From: Iphione sp. A-MEVVRFRX5
Lineage: Eukaryota
Direction of reading: 5' to 3'
Length of the DNA: 64,000 bases
Assembly: GCA_976226885.1 (NCBI GenBank)
Contig: OZ320316.1
Location: 109,306,001 to 109,370,000, forward strand
The notes under the pieces are model-generated. The model was given only the letters and a program-made list of their open reading frames with translations. It ran no database searches and had not been told where the DNA came from. Of the stretch, positions 491-63,400 are shown piece by piece. The first letter of the stretch is position 1. Every line of letters begins with the position of its first letter. The translations under genes and the position numbers were made by a program.

Positions 491-3400
491 GTCAGTCAAC
501 CATACGTTAACCCTTTCAGCCCGAACAATGCCTTGATCAAGGCTTTCAATATCGTTTTCCTTAAAACCATTTAGGCAAAAAATAGGTGTGTTTCTGGTAA
601 CCCATCCCTACCTAGTAAAACCTCACCCTACCTAAAAATGTTTGGGCCCCAAAGAGTTTCCAAGGCTAAATTTCCTTAGATATTCATTTTCACAACACGT
701 TTTTGGTTAACTCAGTAGAAAAACAACAAAATCCATGGAAATTCACCAAAAAACTGTAAAACTCATACAGATTGGTCAAAATTCTTGATAATGTCTTTAT
801 TATTATTGAAAACCAGAGGAAGAAACTGGAAAAAAATCTAAATAAAAAAAGATACCCCTCCCTACCTAGGTTTTTGCTGGTTGTTACCAGAAACACACCT
901 ATTTTTTGCCTTATGTTTTACCTACACATCCAATGGTTGATACCTCATGTCTATCATATTTATATGATAATTCGATTTCAAATGAGGAGGTGCGTTTATT
1001 GGTGGTTGTGGGAGCTTTGAGAGAATTGACCATTTCCAGAGAACTGCTCTTAAATGTAGAAATGGGATTTTTTGTGATACAGGCCACATTTGAAACGTGT
1101 TGACATTACTGATAAATAGGTTGGTGCATGAACTTTACAGTTGTCTAATATTCAATAAAAATATTTTACCCCTGAAAGATGTTGGTCGGATTGTTCCAGG
1201 AAGCTGAGAAAGTTGTGCAGTTTTACAGGACGTTTTCTTTCTTTTTCGATAAACACTGCACCTTTATCGCCGAATATAGACCGCCAAAACAACCTTAAGG
1301 TGGCTGTGACTTTACTGTGGTCGAATATTATTATGGAAAGTCCCATTCTGTACCTTTTTTTAATAAAAGGGAGGGTACTAGTACCACAGATCTAGTATAT
1401 ATGGATTGGACAACCAAGTCATGCATACCAGTGTAATTACACAAGGAATGGCAAATTGTTTTAACCCAGTTATGAGATAGGGGGTCAAACCTCATGAGTC
1501 AGGAACTATTTTCACAAGCCCCTCAACTGGGACATGGGTCAGAGGTGTGTAGGCTGTATTCAAGGGCAGGAACACCCCATGACAGAGTTTGTGCGGTCTC
1601 ACCAGGGTTCTACACTATCTTTGCGATGTACACAACCACATTTTGTGTTTTTGTTCATTAACTAATTTCTATACAGGAAAAATACCATTGCAGCAATACC
1701 TTTTTCCGTTTATTTTACTATGCTGCAAAATAAGATATTATCAACAGAAAACGCCTTTTATGATGTCAGAAAAGGTAAACGATTTGGCTGTAGCTTGGGT
1801 GGTTGACACTGTAGTGGTCGGTGGATTGTCCTGAGGGTGATCTTGCCTACATTATGGCCTGTCTGTAGGTGATCTGACTGTAACATGGGGGATAACTCAT
1901 GTTGTGTATTTCTAAATAGGCCTACAAGTTACAATAGCCCTCTGGTGCCCTGTTTTAAAATCATTTAAATGTACTGTGGTTTGAGTCAACTAAATTCCCC
2001 TAGAAAGGTTGTCTATTGTCTGCTATTGTTTTCGTAAGGTGACCATCTTGCCGCCCCACTTTGAGCGCGTCTCGCCCGTCTCCACGACTTCCGGTTACCT
2101 TGACCTCAGCGGTACCGGCCTCAAACTGCCGGACGTGGAAACGAATTCTGCCGACCACAAGTACTGTGGCGCCATCTATATTGGCGTCATGGTTGACGGG
2201 GCGACCCCCCGAGACGCCGCCCCGTGTGAGTCAGACTCACTGAAAAACAACCCAAAATAAGAGTTTTCTTATGTGTGATGGACAGGAATTTTATTCTGCT
2301 TTTTTCTCTCTTTCTTCTTAAATTGTTTCCTTTTCTCACATTAAAAAGAAATGATTTTGACAGTGATAGAAAAATAGTTCCTTATAAAAATGCAAAATAT
2401 CTTGTCAAAATTATCCGCCCAGAACTAAGATGTATTGGAAAGAATCGCCCTTATTATAAGATTGTCTCGATTTTAAAAATATTACAAAATTTGACTTTAT
2501 TTCTTCGTGTGGCAAAGAAAATAATTTTTTAGTTGTTAATAGCCTGATTTCACATTTTTTTGTGTATATTGAGGGATTCGTTCTAAAAGTGGCTACCCGA
2601 TTGAAGGTCAAATCACATGGGTGACCAAACCAGAGGAGAGACCGATAATTTATAAAAACCACCGAAGGGACATAATAAATTCTTTAGGCTTAGCGTGAGC
2701 AAATTGTACATCTCTGTCTCCTACGTGGGATTCAACTCTACATTACTGTAGTGCATAGAAACCTACAGAGAGTGTACATCTCGTGATTTCTCGTTGCAGA
2801 TCACGGAGAGGTTAGCGAGCCTGATGAGTGGAATAACTTCATGGTCACACCCATCACTGTCATATGCAGCGGAGGTACGTAGAATAATTAATATTCATGC
2901 TGTCATATGCCACAGATGTACATAGAATTACTAATATTCATGCTGTCATATACAGTAGAGGTATGTAGAATGTGTAATATTCATGATGTCATAAGCAGTG
3001 GAGGTATGCAGAATGAGTAATATGTGTGCTGTCATATACCACAGAGGTTCATAGAATGAGTTTTATTCATGCTGTCATCTACAGAGAAAGTATATAGAAT
3101 GAGTATAATTCATGCTGTCATATACGGTGGAGGTAATTAGAATGTGTAATATTCATGCTGTCATAAGCAGTGGAGGAGTGTAGAATGAGTAATATTTGTG
3201 CTGTCATATACCACAGAGGTACATAGAATGAGCTTTATTCATGCTGTCATCTACAGAGAGAGTATATAGAATGAGTAAAATTCATGCTGTCATATACGGT
3301 GGAGGTTATTAGAATGAGTAATATTCAAGCTGTCATGTACAGTGGAGGTACATAGAATGAGTAATATTCACACGGTCATAATCAGTGAAGGTACGTAGAT

Positions 3401-6400
3401 GGGGTGATAGTCACACTGTCATAATATGCAGGGGAGCTACATAGAATTCACACTTGTCAGCCATTTGGGGAATGATGTCGAGTGAGAGAAAGGGTTGTCA
3501 GACAGTGAGAGGAGAAATCAGTGTGTTTGTGCGCTCGCGCTTGTGTGTGTGTGTAAAACAGTTCTACAGGAAATCTATGAGGCAGCGAATGAGCCCTATT
3601 CAAGATCGCAATGTCACTCTTTTAATGGCGGCCAGGTTGCGTTAATGAATGTGGCACCTAAATGAATACCATTATCAAGGCATCTGGTAACAAAACGCTT
3701 TCAGAATGAAGGATGCATTACATATTATATACGTTTTTGTGGCCCAAGGCCACTTTCTTTATGGATCATTTAAAAGGAATTACCTAAAAAGGCACACCAA
3801 AACAAATAAAGATGTATTCATCAACAAGGCAAAATGGTTTATTGGTAATAATAAAGCCAAAACCATGATGTTATAATCAGTTTGGCTCTGAGAACAAAGT
3901 CTCCCTTAGCGAAGTTACTTAACAGCATTAAACACATCTTCTTCTTTAAGAGAAGTGCAGATTGACTTCACGTTGTCAGATCACCTTGAAGTCACATCCC
4001 AAACTCCCAAGGTCTCCCACATACCTTCACATGGTTTAGTTCTGTTATGATGTGTGATTTTCGTCTAATAATATTCTCTAATGAAGGAAACATATTTCTA
4101 TGAACGAGTGTATATTGTATAAATTAGACACCGTGGATTTATCCATTATTGATTCTATTTTTCTCACTTTCGACGTGTAAATCAAGCTTCCGTCAGAGTG
4201 AACTCACATATGCACAGGGTCCAATGAATAGTTAACCGCACGCTAGGAACTGTAACCATCGATAATACCGCTGCGGCACTGTCATGCGCAGTAGTTGACT
4301 TCCGTCTCATCACCAAGCAGTGATCGATTCCTCATTCCCGACCCGCCATTAAATATGAAGATGTTGTTCAGATGGATGTCACTCGTTCATCAGCATAGCC
4401 CGTGGTCTCCATGAGTCTCCTCCTCTGTCAATGATAGATGAGCGTTTCACTTGACGACGGGAATACATGGATCTTCAGGAAGTAGAATATATCAACTTAG
4501 GAATTTTTTTGGTAGAAGAGAAAAAAGTTAATGTGGTCCATTAGAATCTGAGTATCAGATTTATGTGTATAAATATTCATCATTGATATATACATGTGCA
4601 TTTGTAATATGTATCATTATGACCCCGGTCTGGGACCTCCCTGCAATTAGGACAGCCCACATAATGGGCATACAATGAGCTGATCGCTGATCGCTGAAGT
4701 ATCGGGTAATGCGGACTTCAATTTTACGTAATTGCGACATCGTCTCAATTTTAAGCGATCTGATTGGTCAATTTGCACCATGACATAATAATTTGTAAAA
4801 AAAATTATGTCCACACTACCCGTTTATTCCATCGCTGGCAATCGGTCGATTAGCCTATCACATGTATCACAGTGATGTTCTGTTATCAGCATCATAACAC
4901 AAAAATAATGGTGTACATGTATTTTTACATTGCCCTATGGCTATTACATTAGGTAAAGTGTAAAGGATATGTAATTGATGGTAATTTCCCTGATTGTCGT
5001 ATTGATACAGGTCATCCGTGCATTTAGGAGGCTGCACATGGTATTTTCCTGAAATATTTCAAGTAAACAAGCACCTTTGGCACAATCTGCAGAAGTTTTG
5101 TGGTATTTCCTTCATGTGAAGTATCTCGATAATCCCACAATCACACTGGCCAATGGAACAATAACATCAATGCAGTGGACAGATCCCCCCCTCCTTGTTG
5201 TCTCGTAGAGAGGTTTTCTATTTTATCTATGTTAATTGTTGGAACCCTTCTTCGGAATTGTAGTGGGCAGTCTTTCCATGTTGACAGCCTTCCCACATAG
5301 TGCATTACATTTAGATATGCTTTTTGGACGTTGGCTATGTTCCCACCTCTGTGTGCTACCGAGTATATGGCCAGCCCAGCTGTCTGCCTCCCTTATAAAG
5401 CTCTTACTTTGTTATGTTGCCATGACTCCTGTTTTAGGTCTGACTCTGTTGTTTTTATTGGTAATGGGAGGTGATATGTCTTTTCTGTGGCTATATATGC
5501 CCATGATATTACACAGTTTTGACTATGTCTCTTCAGGCACATGATGTCGAATGTTTTGTTCTTTTTATTATGAGGAAGACACTGTAGATAGTTTATATAT
5601 AGTATGTGTATTACATTCAATCTCCCCTCCTGGTTTTTCTGGAGGGTTGAATGAATTTTTACGACGAGGTTAGTGTTTCCTGATGGTTAATTGTGTTCTC
5701 CATCTAGTAGATTCATTCCATTAGGGGAAATTGTTCTTAGTCTGTGGATCCATTTGTTCTCTAAGTTTAATCTGATGAGTTACATTTAGATTGGACTTCC
5801 TATCAATGTGTCCGAGAATGTGTATTACACCTGAATATTACGTCACCAAATCGCTCCAAACGTGATTTTTTTATGCGGCATATTACTTCGCACATGGACA
5901 GACTGCCTTAGAAGGCCCATAAGGATGGGCCAGGTAGAGTCATTATGTGTCTCCATTAGGTTTGATAAACATATCGAGGTTATGCACTAGTCATGTCTTT
6001 CCTGCGAGGCAGAGGCAACACTATATACATGTATACATGTTTGCATGTGTTTCTGTGTGAATTCAATATATGCAACAGGGTTACCGAACGAATGACCTTA
6101 TGAACACCTACCCCAATGTATCTTTTACATAATCAAAAATAAATGCGATCAACAAGAATTTTTTTTATATATTTGGATGTGGGAGGGACGAATGTAAACC
6201 TTTCGCATTCACACATGCACACACGTGTATACTAATACAGCACAGTATCATGAAATTAGATTTTAAAAAAAAATTCACGCAATTTTCAGCCAGTGCCCTT
6301 TGGTTAGAACATCTTTGACCCGGCTTTTAGATTGAATATCGCAATATCAAAATTCCCTTTTTCTTACAGATTTTTTGGCGCTGACAGATTTCAGCTATTC

Positions 6401-9400
6401 GCTCTTTTACGGCCAGGGTCCCATCACCAATGAATACTCGATTCCAGCCACCTTGACCGCACAGGTTCACGTGCTTCGCCCTCCTAGTGAGAAAAACGTT
6501 GGAGTCTCCCAGTTTGATCTCCGGCTCTACATTAATAATTCCAACACAATAGAGATGGGTGAGTACAAAATCAAGTAGGTATATGCAGTAGATCTGGTTA
6601 ATAAGGTCTGGGTAAGTATATTATAGATCTGGACAAGTGTATAATGGATCTGGGTAAGTATATACAGTGGAGTCTCTACTTACGACCACCACTCTGTTCC
6701 AAGCTTAAATGGTCGTAATGGCAAATTTGGTTGTAAATAGAGTATCAAATGTATAGAAATTAGCATTTTGGTACCCATCTCAGATGGTCTGAAATAGAGA
6801 ATGGTCAGAAATTGATGCGGTCAGAAATAGAGACTCCACTGCAATATATTTATACACTAAAAACATCTATATCTATATCTAAAAGAACATTTAGGTTTGA
6901 AATGTCCTTATTAGGACATTAGAACGTCCACATATAAGGCCTTAAAAAAATTCTGTCTTTCCGGTAACAAGCTGAAAAATTACAGGGTCGGTCGGTAGGT
7001 CACATTTTTTTTATTTTTCTATTTTTTTCAAGGCTAAAGGATCCTGAATTAAACAAATGTCAATGGTAATGTCCCTTATACTGGTTAGATATTAATATCA
7101 TATGAAAGCTAGTAACATGAGGAGCAATTTGATGTATAGAACATGTCTCTATCATTATTCCTTCTGAAGTTATTCAAAAAAAAAATAATAAAAATTTACA
7201 AATGGTTCTAATGTAGGGTCGGTTGGGTTACCGGAAACACAGAACTGTTTTCTATTAGGCCTAATGTAAAACTGCCGTTTACATTGAAGACTACCTCCAC
7301 CACGCCTCACCCCCTTACCCGTTACCCCCCCCCCCCCCCCCCCCCCACTTACATTTGAAGCCTTTCGCTTGAATTATCAGACGCTGCGCCAATGCTAGTG
7401 GACATCCTGAGACTTGGTAAGACTTACCAGTCTACGGACCAGGTCCTTAACGTCAGGGCCACAGGGGAGACCGTGTACCTGACGAAGGTGGAAGTCTGGC
7501 TTGACGCAGACAACTTCCCACCATTGAACATAGAGAAGGAGTGGTGGCTCCATCTGATGGTCGTCGAGGCGTCGACGAGTGACCGACAAGAAGTGGTTGT
7601 AGCGAACAACTATAGGGCTGCACCGGTGAAGGCACAGGCGAAACAAGTCGGTAGAGGTAAGCTCGACAGGTTGGGTGTAAGTTGTTCAGTCTTCCTACAA
7701 TCACCTTGGGTACTTGCCGCCTCTCCCCTTTGTAGCATCTTAAAACCATTGGTTCTGCTTGACTGCACATACAAAGGCATAGCAATACATCGTAAATCGC
7801 AAGGCCAGTGTAATTAATGTGTTGTACTAAACATTTATATAATATACTGCATATTCCATGCTGCACTTACCATTTATACTACACCATTTAGGCTACTTCA
7901 CCGGGTGTACTGATTTGATGTTTTAAATTATATGTATTTACGACAGTCTGTAGACTATTTTGAATACATTTGTTTGAAAACTAATTCTAATCCACCTTTC
8001 AGCTACCAGTGCCAACTGGGACACAGTGACCGACTTTCCGGATCGACTTGTCATAAATGGTAAGATTCACTCAATGGTAGGATTTAAGAAATGGTAGGGC
8101 TCAATTTATAATGGTAAGATTCAATCAACCAAAACCACAAGTAGTTTCTATGTACAACAAAGGTTTGATTCTTCTGTCATTAACTTGAATGGTTCAGAAT
8201 ACCTACCTGGGGTCCTCTCAGAATGAGTCATGGGATCACGTGACCCATTCTACTCCAACAAGAGCTGGCATTCACCAGAGATATAAACCCTTCAGAGAAA
8301 TCACAGAGTTATACAGAACGTGGTTTCTTAGAATGAACTGTTGAAGGTGTTCAAGGCTTTTACAACATCAGATTTAATTTTCATGTTAAACAGCAGTCTA
8401 GTATAATGTCAGCAATGTTATGATACTAAAGCAGGGGGGGTCTTTATCATTTTGCACTGCAATCTAAATATGAGTTCCAGGGATGACCTAGTGACCTAAA
8501 TTGATACAAATCTGCATGTGTAGCTTACAGTGGAGAAAGGACTCCTAGTAGATCCTTGGTAACCCTCTCAAAAATGACAGCATGGCCCAAGTTTGGGTCG
8601 TGACCCTAGGGTTAATAGACCCTGTGCTACAGTAAAGAAATTCATTTGACTACTAAACCAAGCTGATGATTGAGGTCAGGTTGCTAAACTGTTAAACCCC
8701 GCCTTGCAACTCAGGAAATTAAAAGTTATTTGTGTTTCTGGTAACTCAACCAACACAGATTTTGGTGCCAATGGAAGGTTTTATTTGATTATTGATTTGT
8801 AAACATCTTGGCCATGAAATAGATTACATACAATACACCGTTTTGGTGCTTAGGCCATTAGCTGTCATTTTGATATGTATATGTTTAAGCAGGGAAGGGA
8901 TTCTTCCAAGCTTAGAAAATACTCTCAAGCATCATTTTGACATTTGTTTGCACCGAACCAAAAATCCATCGACATAGAGGCCCTATCCATTGTTTTAACG
9001 TGTTACCAACAACACGTTCTGTTTGTCGCCTTATGTCTCTAATCGGACAATAAACAAATATCTTCTCTTAATCTTAATATCGGGCGTATCTCTCTACTTC
9101 AGACACGCTGGAGGAGGACACTTTCACCGCTAGTTTCACTCAGGGCAGCGCTTTCGAGGATATCTTCTGGTCTATCGATAACATGTAAGCAATTATAACA
9201 CTTTGGCCCCCCCTATTCGTTTATAATTATCGAGTTTATTAACATGCGGCTTTATACGGTGCATTTCAACTTGATTTATCTTTATGGCCTTTGTTTGACC
9301 TTACCATCTTATATGAATCTGTGCAATTTTGTTTTTGATTTTACTGAACCAGTTAAGTAAACTGAAAAGATGAAAAACAGTTATAATTTGATGGTTTGTT

Positions 9401-12400
9401 TCAACCGCAGGCTTGACTCGTCGGACGTTGTTTCTGGTATAAAATTAAAAACGACGCCTGACAATATAAATAATCTGGTTGTGGACACCGATACAGAACC
9501 GAACGTCCCTACAGTCCCGGACAAATACTGCGGCGCCGTGTATGGCATCCTGAAGCTGCAGGCGGGACCGAACTTCGATGACAACACTGCCCATGATAAC
9601 CAAGATGTTCGACCAATCGTGCTGGAATGCGACTCAACAGGTGGAAATTCTCACCACTTTCTTTATATAGACATTGTATATATGTATACGTTTATTTATG
9701 GATACATGTACTCGTAAATCTGTATGTGTGCTTGCTATTTGCTCAGTCAAGGGGTTATTTCTCCATCATTCAGATGGTTGGGACATGTGTTAGGGTAAGG
9801 ATTAGGATTAGGCTAGGGTATGTGTTAGCGTCCAGGTTAGGTTAGGGTATTTGTTAGGATTAGGGTTAGGTTGCGGCAAGTGTTAGGGTTAGGATTAGGC
9901 TAGGGCATATGTTAGGGTTAGTATTAGGTTAGGGCATGGGTTAGGGTTAGGTTAGGGCAAGTGTTAGGGTTAGGATTAGGCTAGGGCATGTGTTAGGGTT
10001 AGGGTTAGGTTAGGGCATGTGTTAGGGTTAGGGTTAGGTTAGGGCATGTGTTAGGGTTAGGTTAGGGCAAGTGTTAGGGTTAGGGTTAGGGACAGCCAAC
10101 CAATAATATTTCCCTTAATTTCCATCTATCCCAAGAGTTGGCAGGCCACTTGGTGCTTCTGATATGTCGCCGCCATCATGGATTCCATTATGACGGGGTT
10201 AGGCCACTGATATGCATTTGCTCGCATCATTCAATTTTATCATACTGTTATGAGTCTTTGTGTGTAAGTGTGTGTGTATATCATTTGTCAAGGCTATAAA
10301 GCACAAATCTGTGATTTAGTTCCCTAAGGCCCAAAAAATAGGTGTGTTTCTGGTTACCCACCCCTACCTAGTAAAACCTCACCCTACCTAAACATTTTTT
10401 GGCCCAAAAGAGTTTCCAAGGCTGAATTTCCTTCGATACATGTTTTCATGACATTTTTTTGCTAAATTCAATAGAAAAACAACAAAATCCATTGAAATTC
10501 AGCAAAAAAACTTTAAACTCATACAAATTGGTCAACATTCTTCATATTGTCCTTATCATTCTTGAAAACCATAGGAAGAAAGTGGATTTTTTTTTGGGGG
10601 GGGGGCATCATGCTAGTGTTTCTATGATCAGATCTAAATTCTGGATAAAGTGAGATAAATTTCCTTTTCATAATACATACAAGTGCTTTTGGCACAGTTT
10701 ACACAGGCAAATGTGATTCTGTATCACATGAAATATCACAATATTTCTGCCAGTACACTGACCGGTACTACTTTTGGACAACAAAGTATATAATCAGCGT
10801 AATGTAAATACATGTTTGGCATGAAGGCTGAGCCTGCATGATTCCAGAGTCGTGTTGAGCAAACATGGAATTCCACTATTGCACAAATCCTCCGGAATTG
10901 TCCGGATTCCACAGGGGGCAATTCCCGAATCAGTAGTTCTGTATATTCTGTATTCAGTATTCTGTAATGGCCCAGTGCTACTCCTGCGTTTTCAAGGAAC
11001 TTAAGTTGTTTTTATAGCTTCATTGTCACTGGAATTTACATACACTTCGGTATTTACGTCCAGTTTTGTGCAGATTCTGTCTTCAAACAGATCAATTATG
11101 AAATATAATGAGGGTGAGAAGTAGAATGAAGTAATTTGGGCCCGATTTCAGAATTGTGCAAGCAGTGGGAGCTAGGGCCAAAAAAAACAATAGGTGTGTT
11201 TCTGGTAATGACCACCCAAAAACCTAGGTAGGGAGGGGGAGGCACCTTTTTGTTTTTTTTTAAATTTTCTTTCCACTTTCTTCCTCCAGTCTTCAATAAT
11301 AATAAAGATAATATGAAGAATTTTGACCAACTTGCAGTTTTTTGCTAAATTTCCATGGATTTTACTGTTTTTCTACTGAATTTACAAAAAACATGTACTG
11401 CGAAAATTCAGCCTTGGAAACTCTTTGAGGCCAAACAATTTTTAGGTAGGCTGAGGTTTTACTAGGTAGGGGTGGGTTACCAGAAATACTGCTTTTTTGG
11501 CCTAGTTGCCTTATGCAGCCCTCTGTAGCAACAACTTTAGTTGCAGCTAATATTTTCCGGAGCTCCAGTCTCCAGAGACATACCTGCACACTTTGATTTA
11601 AATAAGGTATTTGGAAATATTATATGAAAATGAAGATGTGACCCCAGATGAATTTAGGAACAAAGGTTAGCAAAGGAAGCGTCATCTGAAAGTCACTGCT
11701 GAATAATCCACATGTCACTGAAATCATATTGTACATTTCCTATATGTTTTTTATTTCTTTATTTCTCCTGAAACACTTGTACATTCAGTAACACTTTGTA
11801 AAGTAAATAATATAGGAAATCATATAGTATTACTATAGTATGTATTACAACATGTACTTTATGTTATATACCTTATCATTCAAATTCTACATGGAATTCG
11901 TTTGTCAGATACGATTTCCCTGTCGGACCTTCAAGTAGACAACCCACCGGTGTTTTGGAAAGACGTGTCTACAGACATCACGTTCACTTTCCTCGTTACA
12001 TGCACGAAAGCCGCCTGTGATGCATCGGTAGGTACACTAATACATGCATACTAGGGTAAACTTATCGAAAAGTGATGTATAATACATTACAAATGGAAAG
12101 CTCATGTTACCACTTGTGGGACAATGAAAAGTGAATCAAAATATTGTAGTTAGGATTTAAATTTAAAAATATATCCGATACGATTGTGAATGTTTTATTT
12201 CTTACTTGAACTTATAGTTTATACCAAATTTATTAGATTCTACTCTTTTTTGAGAGAGTTTGAAAAAAAATAAAGCGCCAAAGGGTTAGTTAATATGCAT
12301 TGAACATTTAATTAGGTGCTAATATTGACCCATATACGAAACGGGTTTTTACATTACTTCAAGTTGAAACTCAACAACAAAGAATATCCCTGAAATAGAA

Positions 12401-15400
12401 AGTGTTATTCTTCAAGGGAAATGCTTCCCCATAGGATGTTATTCTAGAGAGTTGCGTGCTGATGATACTTTGTATTCATCCTTTTCAACATTCTCTTCTA
12501 TTCCCATCGATTAGGTAACAATAAATGTTGTTGCAAAACTGACTAATGAGGCAGCAACTCAGACCTTCTCGGAGACCCTTGGTAAGAGCAACCCCCCCTT
12601 CTAAGATTAAGATTTGTGTAGTTAGATCTCATCAAACTTACCAAAGCTTGTCAGTCAGATCTAACAGCACTGACAGAGCAGTGCCAATCCAATCTGTCCA
12701 GACTGACAGAGCACTGTCAATCAGATCAAACCAGTCTGACAGAACACTGTCAATGAGATCTGGCAGGACTGAGAGAGCACTGTCAATCAGATCAGACCAG
12801 ACCGACAGAGCACTGTTAATCAGATCTGACAAGACTGACCGAGCACTGTCAATCCGATCTGACCAGATAGATAGAGGACTGTCAATCAGAAAGTATAGTA
12901 GTTTAGGCTTGGTGTGGTCGCTAGATTTCCTCATTACCATGCTGGTCAAGAGTCAGTTCTCATACATGAATCGACCTTGTATATTTGTATAACTGTGTAA
13001 ATTTCCCATCAGCGTCCTACTTATTCTTCGCCTCCATCAATATGTCATACCTTAATAGTAGCTTCTGTGCCCTATTCAACCATGGGTAATATGTTCCTTC
13101 TAAGGAGGTTTGGGTATCCATTGTAGATTTCTCCTCCGTGAGAAGAAGAACCATTACCAAGACCCGGGCCTTTACAGCTACCTCAGCCTCCTGTGCTGGA
13201 GCTGAGTCTTTAACCGTCACCATAACTGATGCTGCCTCTGCTGACTGGTCTGATAACAATGAACTGGATGTTGCCTTACCTGCCTTCCAATGTGACCATA
13301 CCGGTAAGCAAGAGCCTCACACTCATAAACTCAACATTACCTTTACCCACCTTCCAATGTGACCATACAGGTAAGCAAGAGCCTCATACTCGTAAACTCA
13401 ACATGACCTTTACTCACCTTCCAATGGGACCATACAAGTAAGCAAGAGCCTCATACTCGTAAACTCAACATGACCTTTACTCACCTTCCAATGGGACCAT
13501 ACAGGTAAGCAAGAGCCTCATACTCGTAAACTCAACATGACCTTTACTCACCTTCCAATGGGACCATACAAGTAAGCAAGAGCCTCATACTCGTAAACTC
13601 AACATGACCTTTACTCACCTTCCAATGGGACCATACAGGTAAGCAAAAGCCTCATACTCATAAACTCAACATGACCTTTACCCACCTTCCAATGTGACCA
13701 CACAGGTAAGCAAAAGCCTCATACTCATAAACTCAACAATACCTTTACCCACCTTCCAATGTGACCATACAGGTAAGCATCAGAGTAATACTGATAAACT
13801 AATAAAAAGGTAGGTCAAGGTATCATTTATCAACTTCTTATGACAGACTACACCCAATTGTTTTCTTTTTAAAGACGGACATGAGTGAAATGAAGGGTTG
13901 GTCATAAGTGTAAGAGTATATCAAGGCTGTGAAAGATGCTCATGACTGTGGGAGTTAATAGCTGAGAGAGGCAATCATGACTGTGAGAACCGACCATAAC
14001 TGTGACAGCTAACCATGAACGTGAGAGCTAATCATGACTGTGAGAACTGACCATAACTGTGACAGCTAACCATGAACGTGAGAGCTAACCATGACTGTGA
14101 GAACTGACCATAACTGTGACAGCTAACCATGACTGTAAAAGATGACCATGACTGAGACAGTTGGCCATGACTGTGATAGCTAACCATGACTGTAAGAGGT
14201 GACAATGACTGTAAAAGCTGATAATGACTATGAGAACTGACCATAACTGTGAGAACTGATCATAACGGTGACAGCCGATGATGACTGTAACAGCTGACTA
14301 GGCCTGAACATGAGGTATAATTCAACTCCTGCTTTGGCCGACTCCAGAGAAAATCAACATTGAAGCCACCTCGCTGACGTTGGACGTTACGCCGGTGGAG
14401 CTCGGCCAGAATATTCCCTTCACACTGAGCGCCACGATTCACACTGACAGCTCCTCCTACGGGCAGGAAACATGGCCACACTTTCTCTACTCCATCTACA
14501 TCTCGGCCGACGAAACGATCGACCAGAACGACTACAAGGTCCCCTACGTCATCAACGACTGTCAACGTGACGTGCTCAGCGGCGAGCTGACGGACAGCCT
14601 CGTTCTGACACTGTCCGATGATGGTAAGTCAGAACGGCTCCAACCGGTCACGAACGAAGTAGTAGAGGTGATATAACCATATACATTCCTTCCTGTCAGC
14701 CTGAATTAACATTGAAAAAAAAGGAAAAAATAGTGCCTACCGACTAACTCTCTCTTTTTTGGCTCGTTACCGGAAACAAAGAGCTTTATTTATAGCCTAA
14801 TAGACTTTAATTGAATTGAGTTGAAAATGATTTTTTCCAACATATCACGAAAGCGGGCGTTTTTCTAGTTTAAAATGAACACGATATGACAATTCAGTGT
14901 TTCTGACAACACTTACACAGAGTTTTGTGTAAGGTAATGGCGATTTTAGCACAGGCCCATAGCCAGGAAGTTTTGTCGGGGGCATCGGACGATGCCCCCC
15001 CCCCCCCAGTACCCAAGAGGTGGGACTCCTGGCATCCATCTCTATGCATACCTGTAGAACAAATGTATTCCCCTGTGGAAATGTAATGATTGCTCTTTTG
15101 GATAGTAGTTTGGGTAGAAGGTACATTCAAAATTTTAGTTTTACGGGTATTTAATAACAGGCTGTTGCTCCTGCACCGTAGATCTATGTTGTTACAGATA
15201 GTCAAAGTATTAGCCTGCAATGTAGTGCCTACGTAACATATAGATTCTTCAGTAGACTATCATTTGCTACTCTGTATCGGTGAGTGAAACGTCGAAGACC
15301 AGCTATAAAACATTGAAGATCATTGCACATGTAGCTACAATTATTATATTTCTTAATATCACTGCATTAAGACCATGTAACTGCTAAATCCATCGTAGGG

Positions 15401-54400: not shown

Positions 54401-57400
54401 CCCCCGCATTCATAAAGCCTTTCCCCTTACAGCCCCTCCACGTTTGATTCTTCTCCAGACGTCTTCGCACTCTCACAGCTCCGCATACACCAGGCGGAGC
54501 CAATGTGGCCGGATGCGGAAGTGAGTCTCACCGTCGATGCGCACCTGACTAACGTCGGCACGGAGCGGGTCGTAGCCCGCCTTGGTCCGTCCTTACAGCT
54601 GGCTGCCTATCTATCCAGTGACCCCGTCCTCGATGTGTCCAGTGATAGGTTCCTAGGACGACCACAGATCCCTGAGGGTATGATGATGATTTATGAAATG
54701 GTTGAACAAGGTGGTTGGGGGTTGATGTTCCTCCACATCTGCGTTGATAATTCTCAGGTCACTCCAAGCATCCAGCAATCAGAGTGGAAATATACTTATC
54801 CATGTCAAAGCATACACACAGTAAATGGTAGATTGTATACCTGTCCAAATAGCAAAGTATACAAGTATCAAAGTACACAAGTGTGAGAGTGCAAGTAGCA
54901 AAGTATACAAGTAGCAAAGTGTATACATAGCACAGTATACACATAACAAATGATGGCGTGAAGACCTATCCAACAGCAAAGTATACAAGTATCAAAGTAC
55001 ACAAGTGTTAGAGAGTGCAAGTAGCATAGTATAAAAGGAAAACAGTGTACACATAGCAAAGTATACACATAGCAAGTGATAAATTGTAGACCCATCCAAG
55101 TATCAAAATATACAAGTATCAAGGTATGCAGGTGTTAGAGTATGCAAGTAGCAAAGTGTATACATAGCAAATGAAGCTATTCTTCAACATCTGCATTGAA
55201 AAATAATAGATATAAATTCAGTTGTTCCTGCACTTCTTTTCAGTTGTTAATCATGAAATCCTCTGTAATTGCGGAGATGGTTAATAAAATATTAGAATTT
55301 GAATTTAATTTTTGATTGACCATGAGGCATGAACCTTTTACTCCGTACCGCTGTTAATTTCTCGATTGCCCTCCCCGCCTCTTCAGGGTTAATGGAGGCG
55401 CTGACGGAGGGCCTTGACCCTGGAGAGACGCTCGTCCTCTCTGACCTTCAGGTCAGTAACTTCACCGTCGCTCAGGAGAACTGCTCCGTGGCAAGGTTCC
55501 TCCTCTTAAAAGTGGAGCCCCTCTCTGGGTTCTCCGTCACAGACAGTGAGAGCAGTAACAACTTCAAGGCTATGCCTCTGGTGACTAGGTGCGATGGTAA
55601 GTAGTAAGCTTCACATTATGACAGTCTTGCAATGGTATACAGTAGAAACTCACAAGTGCGGAGACCCTTGGTTCCCAGTGAAAGTGTTTATATTGAGGGG
55701 CTGTCACTAGTCCGTGATAGTTCAATTTATGACCAGATTATAATTTTGCTCTGTTTGATAGTGTCCCCAGCCTCTAGTAACTGGGTGTGAAGGTGAGTGG
55801 TAACCTTCACATTAAGACAATAGTGTACAGTAGGGTGTCACAAGTGGGGAGACCTTCAGTTCTTGGTAAAAGTGTCTGCATTAAGGGTATGTCAGTAGTC
55901 CTGGATAGTTCATTTTATGACCGTATTGTAATAGTGTTCTGTTAAAGAGTGTCCTTAGCCTCTGGCAACAAAGTACAAGGGTAAGTGGTAACCTTCACAT
56001 TGACACAGTCTTGGGATGGAGTACAGTAGAACAGCACAACCGGGGAGACCTTTGGTTCTTGGTGAAAGTGTCTGCATTTATGGGATGTCAGTAGTCCTGG
56101 ATAGTTCAATGTATGACCGTATTGTAATAGTGTTCTGTTAAAGAGTGTCCTTAGCCTCTGGCAACAAAGTACGAGGGTAAGTAGTAACCCTCACATTGAC
56201 ACAGTCTTGGGATGGAGTACAGTAGAACAGCACAACCGGGGAGACCTTTGGTTCTTTGGTGAAAGTGTCTGCATTTATGGGATGTCAGTAGTCCTGGATA
56301 GTTCAATGTATGACCATATTGTAATAGTGTTCTGTTAAAGAGTGTCCTTAGCCTCTGGCAACAAAGTACGAGGGTAAGTAGTAACCCTCACATTGACACA
56401 GTCTTGGGATGGAGTACAGTAGAACAGCACAACCGGGGAGACCTTTGGTTCTTGGTGAAAGTGTCTGCATTTATGGGATGTCAGTAGTCCTGGATAGTTC
56501 GTTTTATGACCGTATTGTAATAGTGTTCTGTTAAAGAGTGTCCTTAGCCTCTGGCAACAAAGTACGAGGGTAAGTAGTAACCCTCACATTGACACAGTCT
56601 TGGGATGGAGTACAGTAGAACAGCACAACCGGGGAGACCTTTGGTTCTTTGGTGAAAGTGTCTGCATTTATGGGATGTCAGTAGTCCTGGATAGTTCAAT
56701 GTATGACCATATTGTAATAGTGTTCTGTTACAGAGTGTCCTTAGCCTCTGGCAACAAAGTACGAGGGTAAGTAGTAACCCTCACATTGACACAGTCTTGG
56801 GATGGAGTACAGTAGAACAGCACAACCGGGGAGACCTTTGGTTCTTGGTGAAAGTGTCTGCATTTATGGGATGTCAGTAGTCCTGGATAGTTCATTTTAT
56901 GACCGTATTGTAATAGTGTTCTGTTAAAGAGTGTCCTTAGCCTCTGGCAACAAAGTACGAGGGTAAGTGGTAACCCTCACATTGACACAGTCTTGGGATG
57001 GAGTACAGTAGAACAGCACAACTGGGGAGACCTTTGGTTCTTTGGTGAAAGTGTCTGCATTTATGGGATGTCAGTAGTCCTGGATAGTTCAATGTATGAC
57101 CATATTGTAATAGTATTCTGTTAAAGAGTGTCCTTAGCCTCTGGCAACAAAGTACGAGGGTAAGTAGTAACCCTCACATTGACACAGTCTTGGGATGGAG
57201 TACAGTAGAACAGCACAACCGGGGAGACCTTTGGTTCTTGGTGAAAGTGTCTGCATTTATGGGATGTCAGTAGTCCTGGATAGTTCGTTTTATGACCGTA
57301 TTGTAATAGTGTTCTGTTAAAGAGTGTCCTTAGCCTCTGGCAACAAAGTACGAGGGTAAGTGGTAACCCTCACATTGACACAGTCTTGGGATGGAGTACA

Positions 57401-60400
57401 GTGGAACAGCATAACCGGGGAGACCTTTGGTTCTTGGTGAAAGTGTCTGCATTTATGGGATGTCAGTAGTCCTGGATAGTTCAATGTATGACCAGGTTGT
57501 TATTCTGTTCTGTTAAAGAGTGTCCTTGGCCTCTGGCAACAAAGTGCGAGGGTAAGTGGTAACCCTCACATTCACACAGTCTTGGGATGGAGTACAGTAG
57601 AACAGCACAACCGGGGCAGACCTTTGGTTCTTTGGTGAAAGTGTCTGCATTTATGGGATGTCAGTAGTCCTGGATAGCTCAATGTATGACCAGGTTGTTA
57701 TTCTGTTCTGTTAAAGAGTGTCCCTAGTCTAAGGGTGCCCCTGTCTTGGATATCTCCAGTTGTGAGATTCTGCTGCATATACAGTGGAAACTTCTTTACG
57801 TGTATACCTCTGCTATGAAAGTCTTCTTTGAGATCACTTCATTGTCAGAAGCTTCACAAGCGGAGTTATAAACAAACAGCCATTAGAACACATTGGTCTT
57901 CTTTATAATCCCATGTATTGGTCTCACTTTTTATATTGATAGTATTATTGATTTTGTTATAAAGGAACTTGGTCTTAGAAGATTGGTAATAGATATGAAG
58001 GTGTTTTATCATAATTTTATGGCATTTCGCCATCCTCATGGATTTTTCTGACATGGTGTTATATTTTGGTTAGGAAATGTCTGTCACTCGCAACCAATGT
58101 CATTTATTTTCAGTATTCTCGGAGATTCAGATGAAGGTCTCATTAGAGTCTCTCTGTAGGCTTCCTAGTTTTGTCTCTGGAGGATATTTTGCTCCTAACT
58201 TTATCCTTATGGTGACATTGCTTTACTGACAAGGCTTAATAAAATAAGTTTGTGTTTCTGGTAATGCGACTGACCGATATTTTAGTCCCAATGGAATGTT
58301 TATTGTTTCTTCTTCTGTGAATATCTTTGGACTGAATAATGATAGAAACATTTACAATACACCATTGTGTTCCTCAGATCACTAAAAATCCAAGCACTCA
58401 AAGCATTATTATCAATTAATTTCTTTGCTATCTGGATGAGTTAATGTTAAAAAAAAAAAATTTACCTACCGACCGACCGACCTTCAATTTTTTCAACATG
58501 TTACTGCAAATACAGACGTTTTTAGGACTAAGCTTGATTTGCTTTGTGTTATTGCAGGTGATGTTGATATTGAAATAACCTCGTTTGATGGAATGACGGG
58601 TCTGTCTGTGAGAATTATGTGGGATGACTTCAATATAAGACCAGGTAAGTCCAATTTCCATCTAACTAAATGATTATGTAACCAAAGAGACAGTAGCGAA
58701 GGAGGGGGATAGACAGCGTGACAGCACCAGCACAGCATTAACAGTAATGGACTGCACCGTTTGACTAATGGTCAGCTGTCAAACTAGACTAATTGTCAGC
58801 TATCAAACTAGACTAGTGGTCAGCTGTCAAACTAGACTAATTGTCAGCTGTCAAACTAGACTAGTTGCCAGCTGGCAAACTAGCCTAATGGACAGCTGTC
58901 AAACTAAACTAATTGTCAGCTGTCAAAATAGACTAGTGGTCCGTTGTCAAACTAGACTAATGGTCAGCTGGCAAAGAAGCCTAATGGTCAGCTGTCAAAC
59001 TAGATAGAAGCTCTGTTTGTATTTTAACGTGTCCCAGTGTGAACGCAAAGTATAGTTGACTTTGTGCACAACTCAGCTAGGAATGCAACTGAGAATTCAG
59101 GGTGCTTTGCTTGGTCCAAATGATTTATTTCTGATAATATAACCAACAAAGAACCTCTCATAGTAAAGGGGAAAGTTTCAGGGCTGGCTCGTCACAGCAC
59201 CAGTAACTCATACTGGGAGGTAAATATCTAAATTTGTTTGTAACTAACAGAACCATCTGAAAATATATATTTGATACAGTATCTAAGATGAAACTCTAAA
59301 TGTTATCTGTAGTGTAATCCTTATATTTCAGAAACTAATATCTTTTAAATACTCAACCAATCTTGAGTAATATTGAGAAGCCAATTTTCACTGAAGTTAA
59401 GTTTTGTCAATCAGAGTAGATTTGAACATCCAGAAACCAATCCCTGGCTCCTGGCCTTCAATTATTATTAAATAGCTGGTCAATACACTATAACAGGACA
59501 GCAAATACTAAAAGTACCATGGTCAGTTTTTGAATTTTCATTCCAGTTATGCTGAAAAGTTTGTTTTTGCACAGAAAAATTATGTGTTTTTTGTGGAGGA
59601 TAGACCTCACTTGGGCCTGTAGACAGCCATGTATGTTATGGAAGGCGCCTTGTATGGATCTCTGTGCAGAAACCAATATGGCAGGTCTGCCCTTTCTTCT
59701 CTCTCCTTTCTAGAGTCGTTCACCTACCGGATGTGGATTTCCCATGATGCCCAGCTGGATCCTGACTTAGATTGGCGCCTTAAATATGGCGGAGAGGTGT
59801 CAGTGGGGTACCAGTCTGGCGCTTCCTACGACGCCCACACAGGCGTCATTGACATTGCCGACGTTCCAGACGCTTACTGCCACAATGCCTTTATTATCGC
59901 CCAGGTGGACTTGAGCAATGGCATAATGGAGCGTAATAAGGGCAACAATATTAAATCAGCCGCAGTTACCAAATCATGTGACACAGGTGCGTTTTACTTG
60001 TTTTTAATTATTTTTGTTTTTTAATTCAGTTGATATATGTCTCACCAGATCAAAGAATTCCAGGCCTCGCTGCTCTGAGTGGTTTTACAATGACATTAAT
60101 AATGCAGTCATAACCTTTAATGAGTTAGCTGGTTCGACCTTTTTGTTTTTTGTTCAACATATGAATGTCAACCCAAATTATAACCCTTTTTCCATGAAAG
60201 TAATTCACAAAAGATGAAATGACAAGAAAAGCATAAGAACATAAGATAACATGACAGGGATACCATGACAACAATATAAATATAAGCTAAAACGATGAGC
60301 ATGAGATAACATGACAGACAGAGATAACAGGAAAAATCTGAGAGCTAGGGATCTTTTCAGCATGAATATGAAAGCAGATGCAGTTGCCTGTGCTTCTGTC

Positions 60401-63400
60401 TTTTTGTTTCTCTAGATATCATGTGGTTCACCATTGAGGCTCCCCCGATGGTAAATCCGACGTACAACAAAGTATTTTCCATGCAAATGGACCTGAGAGT
60501 CGAATGCTACAGACCGGATCCATCACAATGTCCGCCCCTGGATGCTGCCCCGGGTTCGGATTACATCTCTTTTGTTCTACAGGTAAGTCACCTTCCACAG
60601 TCAAGGTCAGCTTCCAGAGTCAATGTCAATTTCCAAAGTCCAGGGCATTTTGCACAGTAAATGTCACCTTCCATAGTCCAGGTCAACTTCCAAAGTCAAG
60701 GTCAACCCCGACCGTCAAGGTCAACTTCCAAAGTCAAGGTCACCCTACCACCTCTTTTCTCGCTTTTATCCCCTTGTATCTTCTACCCAACATTGACGCC
60801 TGTTTCCAGCCTTGTGTCGATCTGTGTGTTTGCTTCGCTCATATGTATTCACCTATAATGTTATAGAAGGAAACTTGCGTGTGAAGGCCTCCACCAGATG
60901 GCCCAGAGTATTTCATCTGCCTTATAATTGTCTGTATATGGGTAACCAGAGGGAAGGACAGGCAATTCAATGGAGTTTTGTTTATTGTACAATAGAGGTG
61001 TGAACGTTACGCTGGGGTTGAGTCACGGCTTCCGACACCCGATGCGGGAATATTTGAATGAACTTTGACATGATGTTTATGTTGCAGTTGTATGATGGAG
61101 ATCTGATCCCTGTGGCAGACCTGGAACCTAATGTCATCGACGGCACTTCTGAGAGGCTGGTGACTCCCGAAATACTAGGCAATCGCTTGGATCAAGGTAA
61201 CCAGCAGATAAGTAATACAATGTTACCAGTCATGGCAAATCAAGGTTGGGGGAGGAAAACCATTGTCGAAGGTTAATGGAAAGTCATTTTAATTTGTCCT
61301 TGCCCAAAAAGTCATAGAATACTCATATTATTACATCCTCAGCTACCAGGTTCGGGTGGTAGGAGGGTCTGTAAGGCGCAGGCTGTAAAGGTAGTGAGGA
61401 GGCTTTTACGAATTCCTTGAAACGCTAACCTTTTCGGGGAGGATAGTCATTGATTTGTGTCTGTAGTGACTAAATTCGAGAATCAGGTAGTTGTAAGAGA
61501 TTATTACTCTTACAAGTCTCTGTACACGGCCTTCTTAAATTCCGTTGTATATATATTTTCTCCTAAAGATGTTGGCGAAGAACTGCCATGGGAAACATTT
61601 ATATCATGGCTATGTTTAGTGAGATTTGTATGACAACCTTTGCATTATTTACTTAAAGCATGTCAGCTTCAGCATCTTTAGCCGTAATTTCCATGTGAGT
61701 CTATTTTAAGATAACACTAACGAAATACTGATAACTTGATAACACGGATAGTAGTACTGATAGCACAGTGATGGTGATACCACTTACAACATTGATAGTA
61801 ATTCTATTTATATTAATGATAAGAGTGATAAATGGGGTAACATCAAAACAGTAATTAAAACTGCTGACTAAAATGACAATGCTACCAGTCATGAAAATAC
61901 CACTGACAAAAATGAAACACGGCTACCAGTAATGGAAATACTAATGACAGTGATGAAATACTGCTTATAGCAATGAAAATATTGCAGAAAATAATGAAAC
62001 AATGAAACACTGAAACACTACCAGTTATGAAAATATCAATGACAGTGTTGAAACACTAATAATAGAAATGAAAATGTTATTTAGAACAATGAAACACTGC
62101 TTACAGTAATAAAAATACTGGTGACAATAACAAAACACTGCAACCAGTAGTGACAATACAGCTGACAATAATGAAACACTGTGATACCATTGACCCGATT
62201 GATTCACCCTTGCAGGACCACTACTTGTAGAGATCAGTGGTGATTTTATAATGAAGAACAGAACACAGTGTGAGGATATCAGGTACATGGAGGTGAAACT
62301 TCAGCGAGGAAATGCACCCGTCGGACCCACCAGCCCTCTGAGCCTGGGACCCCCCGCCAGCAAGACTCGACTGACCCCCTTCACGGTGATCTGTGATGAA
62401 CGTGAGTATCAGGGACACCCAGCACTCCGGGAGAAATGCAGTAGAGACTCGGTTAGCAACCCCCTTTCTGCAACAACCATTGCTTCTTCTATAGAGCCAG
62501 AGCAGAGAAAGTACAAATTTAATATAATGAATATAACCTTACAACCAATCTAACAACCACTTCTTGTAAAGGCCAGAGTAAAAATGTGGTTGCACGAATA
62601 ATGATGCCCAAAATATCATATAATAGTATTCTATATTTTAATTACTATTGTTATATATAAACCTAATATTATAAACATCAAAATGGTGTAACATAGATGA
62701 TAGCATAGCACCTTGTGTACCTTTTATGACTGTGTTCATTATCTCATGGAACATGGTAATCTTACATGTTCATTTGATTACTGATGCACATGGCTGTTTA
62801 CCTCAAAGTATGCATACTGTTGTATGGGTTCCTGTAAATCTTGGTGGCTTAGGCTCTCCTTGCCTACTTCAGAAAGCCTATTCTCTCACCACAGATTCCA
62901 GTAAGAATGAGATCATGAGAATGGAAGGTCCGTATCTTGCTCACTTAGCTGAGGTATATAAATTATGTTTAGCTGTAATGATAAAGCATATAGTAATATA
63001 TCCTAGTATATGTCTCAGGACATCTTAAGTAGCCAATGTCCATGCCACTTCATCCCTTTATGTTTCAGCCTATTTTGTCAGAATCATCTCATACTAGGGC
63101 TGCCTACACTTTTATTTTAAATCATGTTGTCCTCTCTGACAAGCAGACAAATATAATTAAATGAAATAATAGATGGGACGGGAAAATTTAGCAATTTCTC
63201 CTAATGGAAACTTTTTGTTGGACGTGACAGTATGAATATTGTCTGCCATGTATCACAGATTTGAGTGTCCTTTGAATTTTCTTTCACAGGATCTATTGAT
63301 TTGGCTGTGACATCCTTCATGGTGGGGAATGCTGCCTCACCAGTGAACCATTCAACTCAAGCCCTTCCCTTAGTCATAGAAGTGGATGTCACAGCAACCA

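Follow-up and report, generated by a model that had tools for sequence, protein, structure and literature searches.

Why should exon after exon of a single gene end, or begin, within a ladder of near-copies of its own splice site, and what do such ladders do to the introns that carry them? The question is raised by a stretch of 64,000 nucleotides (nt) from contig OZ320316.1 (positions 109,306,001 to 109,370,000, forward strand; hereafter the window). In one long gene of this window, ten exon junctions were each found to coincide with the terminal unit of an array of local tandem repeats: five of these arrays are of donor type and five of acceptor type, and they lie in ten introns. These arrays are probably examples of 'mirages', minisatellite-like tandem duplications of exon-intron boundaries described from the amphioxus globin genes BflGb6 and BflGb9 (PMC3087553). 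As such they would represent the tolerated share of a high rate of duplication, with decoy splice sites that are neutral and ignored by the spliceosome.

The host gene was delimited with a simple dynamic-programming model that combined codon log-odds, splice-site weight matrices and phase continuity:

309 to 63855, + strand: host gene, ~55 credible coding exons, 9.9 kb in total (dynamic-programming gene model).

Beyond the credible exons, the model contains ~12 spurious small connecting exons. The surrounding animal genome is intron-rich and has a G+C content of ~40%, and splice junctions within the gene occur at a density of one per ~580 base pairs (bp). The encoded protein is made up of repeated domains of ~130-150 amino acids (aa) each, starting with a (V/I)DL-like strand and ending with a C...YCG...E.NN...C motif; the domain borders are mostly phase-1.

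Each array was read in register against the exons of this model. Moreover, all 110 junctions were scanned, blind to an earlier list, for a local intron-side copy with at least 19 of 28 bases matching and both halves matching, and exactly the same ten junctions were recovered. By our own estimate ~0.003 chance matches are expected per junction in such a scan, which is negligible. The ten agree one-to-one with those of an earlier, sequence-only reading of the window, whose donor arrays at exons 3, 11, 19, 31 and 49 are those at 2874, 13303, 24868, 37551 and 55596, and whose acceptor arrays at exons 13, 15, 16, 33 and 37 are those at 15527, 18765, 20189, 39032 and 42427. Their structures are as follows (scores are from splice-site matrices trained on the gene's own sites; a slash marks the cut point).

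2857 to 3447, + strand: donor-type array of a 43-bp unit, with a first unit made up of 18 nt of exon (up to the exon end at 2874), the GT and 23 nt of intron; 13 decoys, with GT kept in 11.
13276 to 13800, + strand: donor-type array, a 67-bp unit repeated 7.5 times at 95% identity, the first unit taking in 28 nt of exon, up to the exon end at 13303, followed by GTAAGC; 7 decoys, GT in 7/7, scoring 10.0-12.7 against 10.1 at the real site.
15484 to 15547, + strand: acceptor-type duplication, two copies of 32 bp (11 nt of intron, AG and 21 nt of exon); the real acceptor is 15527.
17722 to 18852, + strand: acceptor-type case in which the exon start at 18765 is duplicated locally at irregular spacing; decoy acceptors at 17772, 18196 (with 77 nt of exon-derived sequence) and 18664.
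19216 to 20226, + strand: acceptor-type array whose unit of ~140-155 bp combines a polypyrimidine tract, AG, the first ~35 nt of the exon and a CA-rich spacer; the real acceptor at 20189 is preceded by 5 decoys.
24853 to 25702, + strand: donor-type array of a 74-78-bp unit, beginning 5-16 nt inside the exon ending at 24868; 5-6 decoys of the form AGGGA/GTAAGTTA at 24946, 25021, 25086, 25160 and 25235, plus 25656.
37482 to 37855, + strand: donor-type duplication, a 176-bp unit repeated 2.2 times (70 nt of exon end at 37551, GT and ~105 nt of intron), with a decoy donor at 37727; missed by Tandem Repeats Finder (TRF) and recovered by a separate repeat search.
38509 to 39136, + strand: acceptor-type array of a 147-177-bp unit (~75 nt of intron, AG and ~104 nt of exon); the decoy acceptors (38547, 38708 and 38855) hardly differ from the real acceptor at 39032.
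42170 to 42456, + strand: acceptor-type array, three copies of a 91-bp unit, reaching ~30 nt into the exon that begins at 42427; both decoys have AA in place of AG.
55574 to 57730, + strand: donor-type array, 11 copies of a 196-bp unit with a 393-bp higher-order period and 92% identity, the first unit taking in 23 nt of exon, up to the exon end at 55596, followed by GTAAGT; 10 decoys scoring 9.6-10.6 against 9.5 at the real site.

The weaker cases that the same reading had listed at exons 4, 6 and 52 (donors 6558, 8059 and 60582) were found to be marginal, involving 5-8 nt of exon or ~70% likeness:

6578 to 6664, + strand: weak case, 3-4 units of 21 bp (GATCTGGGTAAGTAT) located 20-40 nt downstream of donor 6558 and ~70% like the junction.
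8055 to 8105, + strand: weak case, a 17-bp unit repeated 2.6 times, beginning 5 nt inside the exon ending at 8059.
60587 to 60744, + strand: weak case, eight copies of a 19-bp unit, beginning 5 nt past donor 60582; the exon's final 8 nt are similar to the unit (10/13), and the junction is conserved in the ortholog considered below.

The ten arrays share one polarity: decoy donors follow the real donor, and decoy acceptors precede the real one. Together they contain 51 decoys (37 donors, 14 acceptors), 47 of which keep the essential dinucleotide (GT in 35/37 donors, AG in 12/14 acceptors). The decoys are strong: scores in the range of real sites are reached by 28 of the 37 donors and 11 of the 14 acceptors, and at 13303 and 55596 no decoy scores more than 0.1 bit below the real donor. 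The earlier proposal that only the exon-proximal copy keeps the reading frame open was borne out, as an in-frame stop precedes each decoy donor and the decoy acceptors would add sequence that contains stops or shifts the frame. For most decoys, no partner site above the ~10th percentile of real sites is found within 300 nt. Conservation was similar in the donor-consensus columns and in the other columns of the unit (0.78 against 0.84, 0.97 against 0.93, 0.98 against 0.96 and 0.91 against 0.81). Identity within the arrays spans 67% to 95%. In the array from 55574 to 57730 the core decoys are near-identical to one another and only 71-75% like the junction copy attached to the exon; two exon-proximal units have diverged from this homogenised core, a pattern seen clearly in this array only.

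Gene prediction is affected by these sites. Five of the ~12 spurious exons or sites of our own model fall inside arrays (acceptor 15495; exons 19324-19338, 38547-38681, 38855-38965 and 57519-57551). Decoy splice sites thus mislead gene finders, and annotation of this genome at array loci needs care. Two of these units, 38547-38681 and 38855-38965, are open pseudo-exons of 111-135 nt with weak donors, both phase 1-1, standing before the exon that starts at 39032. If spliced in, they would repeat the first strand of the domain in frame.

The age of the arrays relative to their introns was addressed by comparison with an ortholog. A HMMER search with exon 44 (40781-41221) against 1.84 billion representative proteins gave a top match of 41% identity to a 195-residue open reading frame (ORF) from an ENA assembly, and from this match the ortholog was walked along an 849-kb contig (ENA ERZ25767047, contig ctg38266_44x_l). 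The two genes share ~40% protein identity, and 39 exons of the window (between exons 4 and 65 of the model) are collinear, with tblastn identities of 27-64%. At nine of the ten array-bearing junctions (13303, 15527, 18765, 20189, 24868, 37551, 39032, 42427 and 55596) the ortholog has a splice site at the identical codon and phase, which confirms the modelled exon borders at these nine. For example, LPAFQCDHT(G)/GTAAGC in the window corresponds to LPAFRCSVN(S)/GTAAGT in the ortholog, and ttgcag/TTGCCATACTTGTGGTTTGACTAC (LPYLWFDY) to ttgcag/CTGCCTTATCCCTGGTTTGACTAT (LPYPWFDY), the slash marking the junction. At the duplicated acceptor 15495/15527 the ortholog has a single copy which continues like the exon-proximal copy of the window, and 15527 rather than 15495 is therefore taken as the real acceptor. 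No arrays were found in those ortholog introns that match the array-bearing introns of the window. Between exons 4 and 49, the share of sequence in tandem repeats with a period of at least 10 is 11.8% in the window and 2.0% in the ortholog. Among the 39 matched exons no intron has been gained or lost between the two species. For exons 1-3 no orthologous match was recovered, even by relaxed tblastn.

Since the junctions occupy the same codon and phase in a relative whose introns lack arrays, the introns and their borders are old and the arrays are recent additions in the lineage of the window. The copy attached to the exon is accordingly the ancestral splice site, and the arrays have neither created nor moved introns in this gene.

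The ortholog's introns have been enlarged instead by retrotransposon and Crypton-like insertions, and almost no minisatellites are present in that gene:

L004 5812 to 20417, L007 5366 to 17602 and L008 15723 to 18080, in two introns of the ortholog: transposons, with a Crypton-like integrase ORF, a long terminal repeat (LTR) retrotransposon Pol of 1225 aa and a reverse transcriptase/endonuclease like that of long interspersed nuclear elements (LINEs).

The same introns have grown by different means in the two lineages.

How surprising, then, is it that arrays should touch junctions at all? TRF reported 51 rows for the window and, combined with self-blastn and a further repeat search, these resolved into 31 local repeat loci that cover 14.4 kb, or ~26% of intron bases. 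Approximately 7.6 kb of the 14.4 kb belongs to the ten junction arrays (summed locus lengths), and 21 of the 31 local arrays stop short of any exon, that is, carry no junction. The sequence-only reading had proposed junction-centred duplication as a major process of intron growth here. The duplication is real and has added much DNA to the introns, but its centring on junctions is only weakly supported. A test suggested at the same time, whether repeats overlap splice sites more often than shuffled positions would, gave no excess. With the 31 arrays placed randomly in the gene, 13.7 ± 2.5 were expected to touch a junction and 11 were observed to do so (P = 0.90). This naive shuffle ignores selection; 6.8 of the shuffled arrays were expected to swallow a whole exon, and no real array does. 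On a per-site basis, 9% of junctions lie inside a local repeat compared with 19% of intron points, and by this measure junctions are not preferred places. A third, fairer null was based on seeds. Here the first duplicated unit, taken as the base period of the array, falls uniformly, seeds internal to an exon are lost, and a seed counts as a junction array if it covers 5 nt or more of exon together with 2 nt or more of intron. This model gave an expectation of 3.5 (actual sequence) or 4.4 (arrays collapsed) against 10 observed (P = 0.001-0.006); an analytic version gave 4.6 (P = 0.008), and the use of the largest TRF periods as seeds raised the expectation to 6.0 (P = 0.05). It also explains why long periods dominate among the junction arrays, which make up 8 of the 16 arrays with periods of at least 60 bp and 2 of the 15 with shorter ones. 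On our reading, about half of the junction arrays are what uniform duplication followed by selection would give, and the excess over this is ~1.7-2.9-fold, the significance of which is uncertain from one gene.

That excess is the ground for an alternative in which mutation itself is biased and duplications tend to start at exon-intron borders, as might follow from breaks or template switches tied to transcription or splicing. We regard such a bias as possible yet unlikely. It is compatible with the mirage reading, and our confidence in the two need not sum to one. Base periods as seeds argue for it (3.5-4.6 expected, P 0.001-0.008), as does the observation that all four arrays with a period of at least 145 bp lie at junctions, where chance would put each with a probability of only ~0.28-0.33. 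The marginal result with the largest TRF periods, the lack of any excess in the naive shuffle and the occurrence of local repeats at junctions only half as often as at intron points all point the other way. Moreover, the case comes from a single gene with 31 arrays, the choice of period is subjective, and the sequence shows no trace of a mechanism.

The remaining alternatives fare worse. In the sequence-only reading the arrays were put forward as candidate intermediates in the gain or sliding of introns, which might account for the variable internal introns of the domain repeats; the process would be a duplication of AG/GT-containing segments of the type proposed by Rogers. A model of this kind has been put forward for the amphioxus globin mirages (PMC3087553), and open-frame pseudo-exons can be drawn in some arrays, such as the two before exon 39032. 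However, these pseudo-exons have no counterpart in the ortholog, and the proposed check for additional introns in orthologs returned no differences at the matched exons. With nine of ten array-bearing junctions at identical positions in an array-less ortholog and 39 exons collinear, the introns predate the arrays and the variable intron positions predate the split of the species, and we consider this explanation very improbable. Only marginally better placed, and still improbable, is a function for the ladders, either in tuning expression through unproductive splicing and nonsense-mediated decay (NMD) or as landing pads for U1 and U2AF through which the neighbouring exon is recognised more strongly or at a set time. 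The strength of the decoys and the premature stops that all decoy donors would bring are what such a role would lead one to expect, but the same introns of the ortholog do without arrays, the splice-consensus columns are conserved no better than the remaining unit, and array identities of 67% to 95% are as under neutral turnover. The decoys at 42427 have lost their AG, and most arrays in the gene (21/31) have no junction to serve. Least probable of all is that the arrays are artefacts of assembly. Assemblers usually collapse repeats rather than create them. The many substitutions between units, the higher-order structure and the diverged edge units are those of real minisatellites, and the same polarity recurs at ten independent loci, although one amphioxus mirage was mis-assembled in a draft genome (PMC3087553).

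We therefore return to the reading of the arrays as mirage-type minisatellites, which can be set out as a sequence of events. The genome would generate intronic minisatellites at a very high rate, and in a gene packed with short exons the first tandem duplication could land anywhere. Duplications internal to an exon would be removed by selection, whereas those within introns or straddling a junction would be tolerated, the latter because the exon-attached copy retains a complete splice site and the reading frame. Unequal exchange or slippage would then amplify the unit on the intron side only, leaving a polarised ladder of decoys. The homogenised core and diverged exon-side units of the 2.1-kb array are as expected from unequal exchange. 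The decoys themselves would be neutral passengers, neither purged nor protected, since conservation in the splice-consensus columns matches that elsewhere in the unit. They would be passed over when exons are recognised from end to end, because a unit carries only one of the exon's two splice sites and the potential partner sites are mostly weak. For decoys adjacent to the exon a rule of position may apply, the first donor after the exon winning as it does in human F7 intron 7. Any leaky use of decoys would yield mRNA containing stops, which presumably would be cleared by NMD. Both ideas of the sequence-only reading, strict exon definition and decoy use that feeds NMD, agree with the sequence.

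Three points weigh against this account. Donor 2874 (exon 3) has no match in the ortholog, and its boundary comes from the gene model and from its likeness to exons that end a domain. Decoys adjoining a real exon, such as 2917-3089 and 13370, share the real partner site of that exon, so that exon definition alone is insufficient for their silence. Furthermore, the uniform-seed model under-predicts the junction arrays (3.5-6.0 against 10), and some junction bias may exist.

All of the sequence-level features that define mirages were found in the window arrays. The earliest account of mirages concerned Adh3 (Canestro et al. 2002, as cited in PMC3087553), and they are also known from amphioxus PGBD5 and troponin C (PMC3902484), among other loci. 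In both systems the unit spans the boundary, 5′ and 3′ boundaries are affected alike, the exon-attached copy is the real site, AG or GT is kept in most units, and a homogenised core contrasts with diverged edge units. Unit sizes are 10-160 bp in amphioxus and 32-196 bp in the window. The window gene differs in being far denser, with 10 clear cases, than what has been reported per gene. In amphioxus, splicing was undisturbed in reverse transcription PCR, copy number varies, and the arrays evolve in concert with their edge units excluded (PMC3087553, PMC3902484). Splicing fidelity and length polymorphism have thus been shown for the amphioxus mirages.

A second precedent is the 37-bp variable number tandem repeat in intron 7 of human F7, the first element of which spans the exon 7 donor (PMC1557585). 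Its pseudo-sites are functional yet silent, and it has been proven experimentally that the most upstream donor is chosen, by 5′-to-3′ scanning (PMC1557585). The arrays at 13303 and 55596 are direct analogues, in that an authentic donor is followed by identical or stronger pseudo-donors within a minisatellite. F7 is, however, a single locus with experimental proof of site choice, and the window gene also has acceptor-type arrays, to which the F7 rule does not apply. Taken together, the arrays match the amphioxus mirages and the F7 intron 7 (IVS7) minisatellite, and do so probably in a genome other than that of amphioxus. Mirages have so far been described in cephalochordates. The representative protein set, which includes NCBI-sourced proteins among others, contains nothing above 41% identity to exon 44, which argues against an annotated Branchiostoma genome, and the contig exceeds 100 Mb, amphioxus chromosomes being considerably shorter.

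The likeness to the Rogers model is more limited. In that model an intron is gained through tandem duplication of an AG/GT-containing segment (as cited in PMC3087553); cases of intron gain by tandem duplication are known in Drosophila (PMC2891723) and the process has been demonstrated experimentally (PMC3265369). Common to both is that tandem duplication places a second splice site of the same kind beside the first. However, the Rogers duplication is internal to an exon and the new intron arises between the copies, whereas the duplications in the window straddle junctions that already exist. No new intron absent from relatives and bounded by duplicates was found at the nine of the ten junctions that are matched in the ortholog, which has the intron there, and no duplication.

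Several other features of the window were recorded. Repeats that on inspection did not span a junction are those at 9776-10090, 12649-12890, 13903-14307, 20509-20561, 21987-23350, 25961-26098, 29826-30017, 31053-31220, 41272-41429, 43013-43340, 48034-48236, 48917-49304, 50364-51007, 51565-51888, 54797-55171, 58763-59004 and 61848-62181. The first of these (9776-10090) is an interstitial intronic array of degenerate TTAGGG-type units with periods of 29, 81 and 110. The array at 45149-45781 was likewise rejected, as it stops 7-17 nt before acceptor 45788 and includes no exon sequence. It consists of 16 copies of a 36-bp unit that holds an acceptor-like TTTACCCATCAG/G (the slash being the cut point) and a donor-like GAGGTGTAT, and it therefore lays a ladder of acceptor-like sites across the likely branch-point region before 45788. 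No repeat was found at acceptor 20988, which was also checked. A dispersed repeat of a few hundred bases occurs in both orientations at 575-1017, 10328-10650, 11099-11619, 15818-16212 and 36471-36964, where ORF pieces cross-match; this intronic repeat is probably a short non-autonomous transposon. An all-against-all blastp of the ORF pieces of the window returned tandem and dispersed repeats only.

Two places in the gene model deserve mention. The exon 20988-21272 is strongly coding (codon score 52) and has no detectable match in the ortholog, in which 6.6 kb separates the neighbouring exons; the domain that it encodes may be lineage-specific or fast-evolving. The modelled donor 14667 (phase 0) is incompatible with the ortholog-supported acceptor 15527 (phase 2), and either the true donor lies elsewhere or a small exon between the two was missed.

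As to the protein, CARDB was the sole Pfam match to the domains, near or below threshold. A word-based protein search with exon 44 as the query gave no match, and a domain hidden Markov model built from the distant relatives of exon 44 failed to detect the other domain repeats of the gene, which are too diverged. The long proteins that exon 44 did match are bacterial or bacterial-like. One is a repeat protein of Tenacibaculum with immunoglobulin (Ig)-like repeats, and a second is an unnamed ORF of 2195 aa on a 14-kb ENA contig, rich in SprB and bacterial Ig repeats according to Pfam. Because these matches are made up of many short stretches in both cases, they look like cross-matches of repeat composition rather than evidence of gene transfer.

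For the gene studied here, the comparison with the ortholog gives a clear negative, in that the arrays moved or made no introns. The arrays at 13276-13800 and 55574-57730 offer natural minigenes in which rules of splice-site choice could be studied outside mammals, namely first-donor scanning, exon definition and clean-up by NMD. A bolder proposition, which we hold to be rather unlikely, is that a second lineage, distinct from amphioxus, is planting ladders of full-strength decoys at exon borders throughout its genome, as an ongoing process and above the rate of uniform duplication. If true, this would point to a junction-linked mutational mechanism and would provide hundreds of natural tests of how the spliceosome chooses the first donor or the last acceptor among identical sites. 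If the host is not a cephalochordate, mirages would be no oddity of amphioxus, but would arise generally as by-products where intron-rich genomes have high minisatellite activity.

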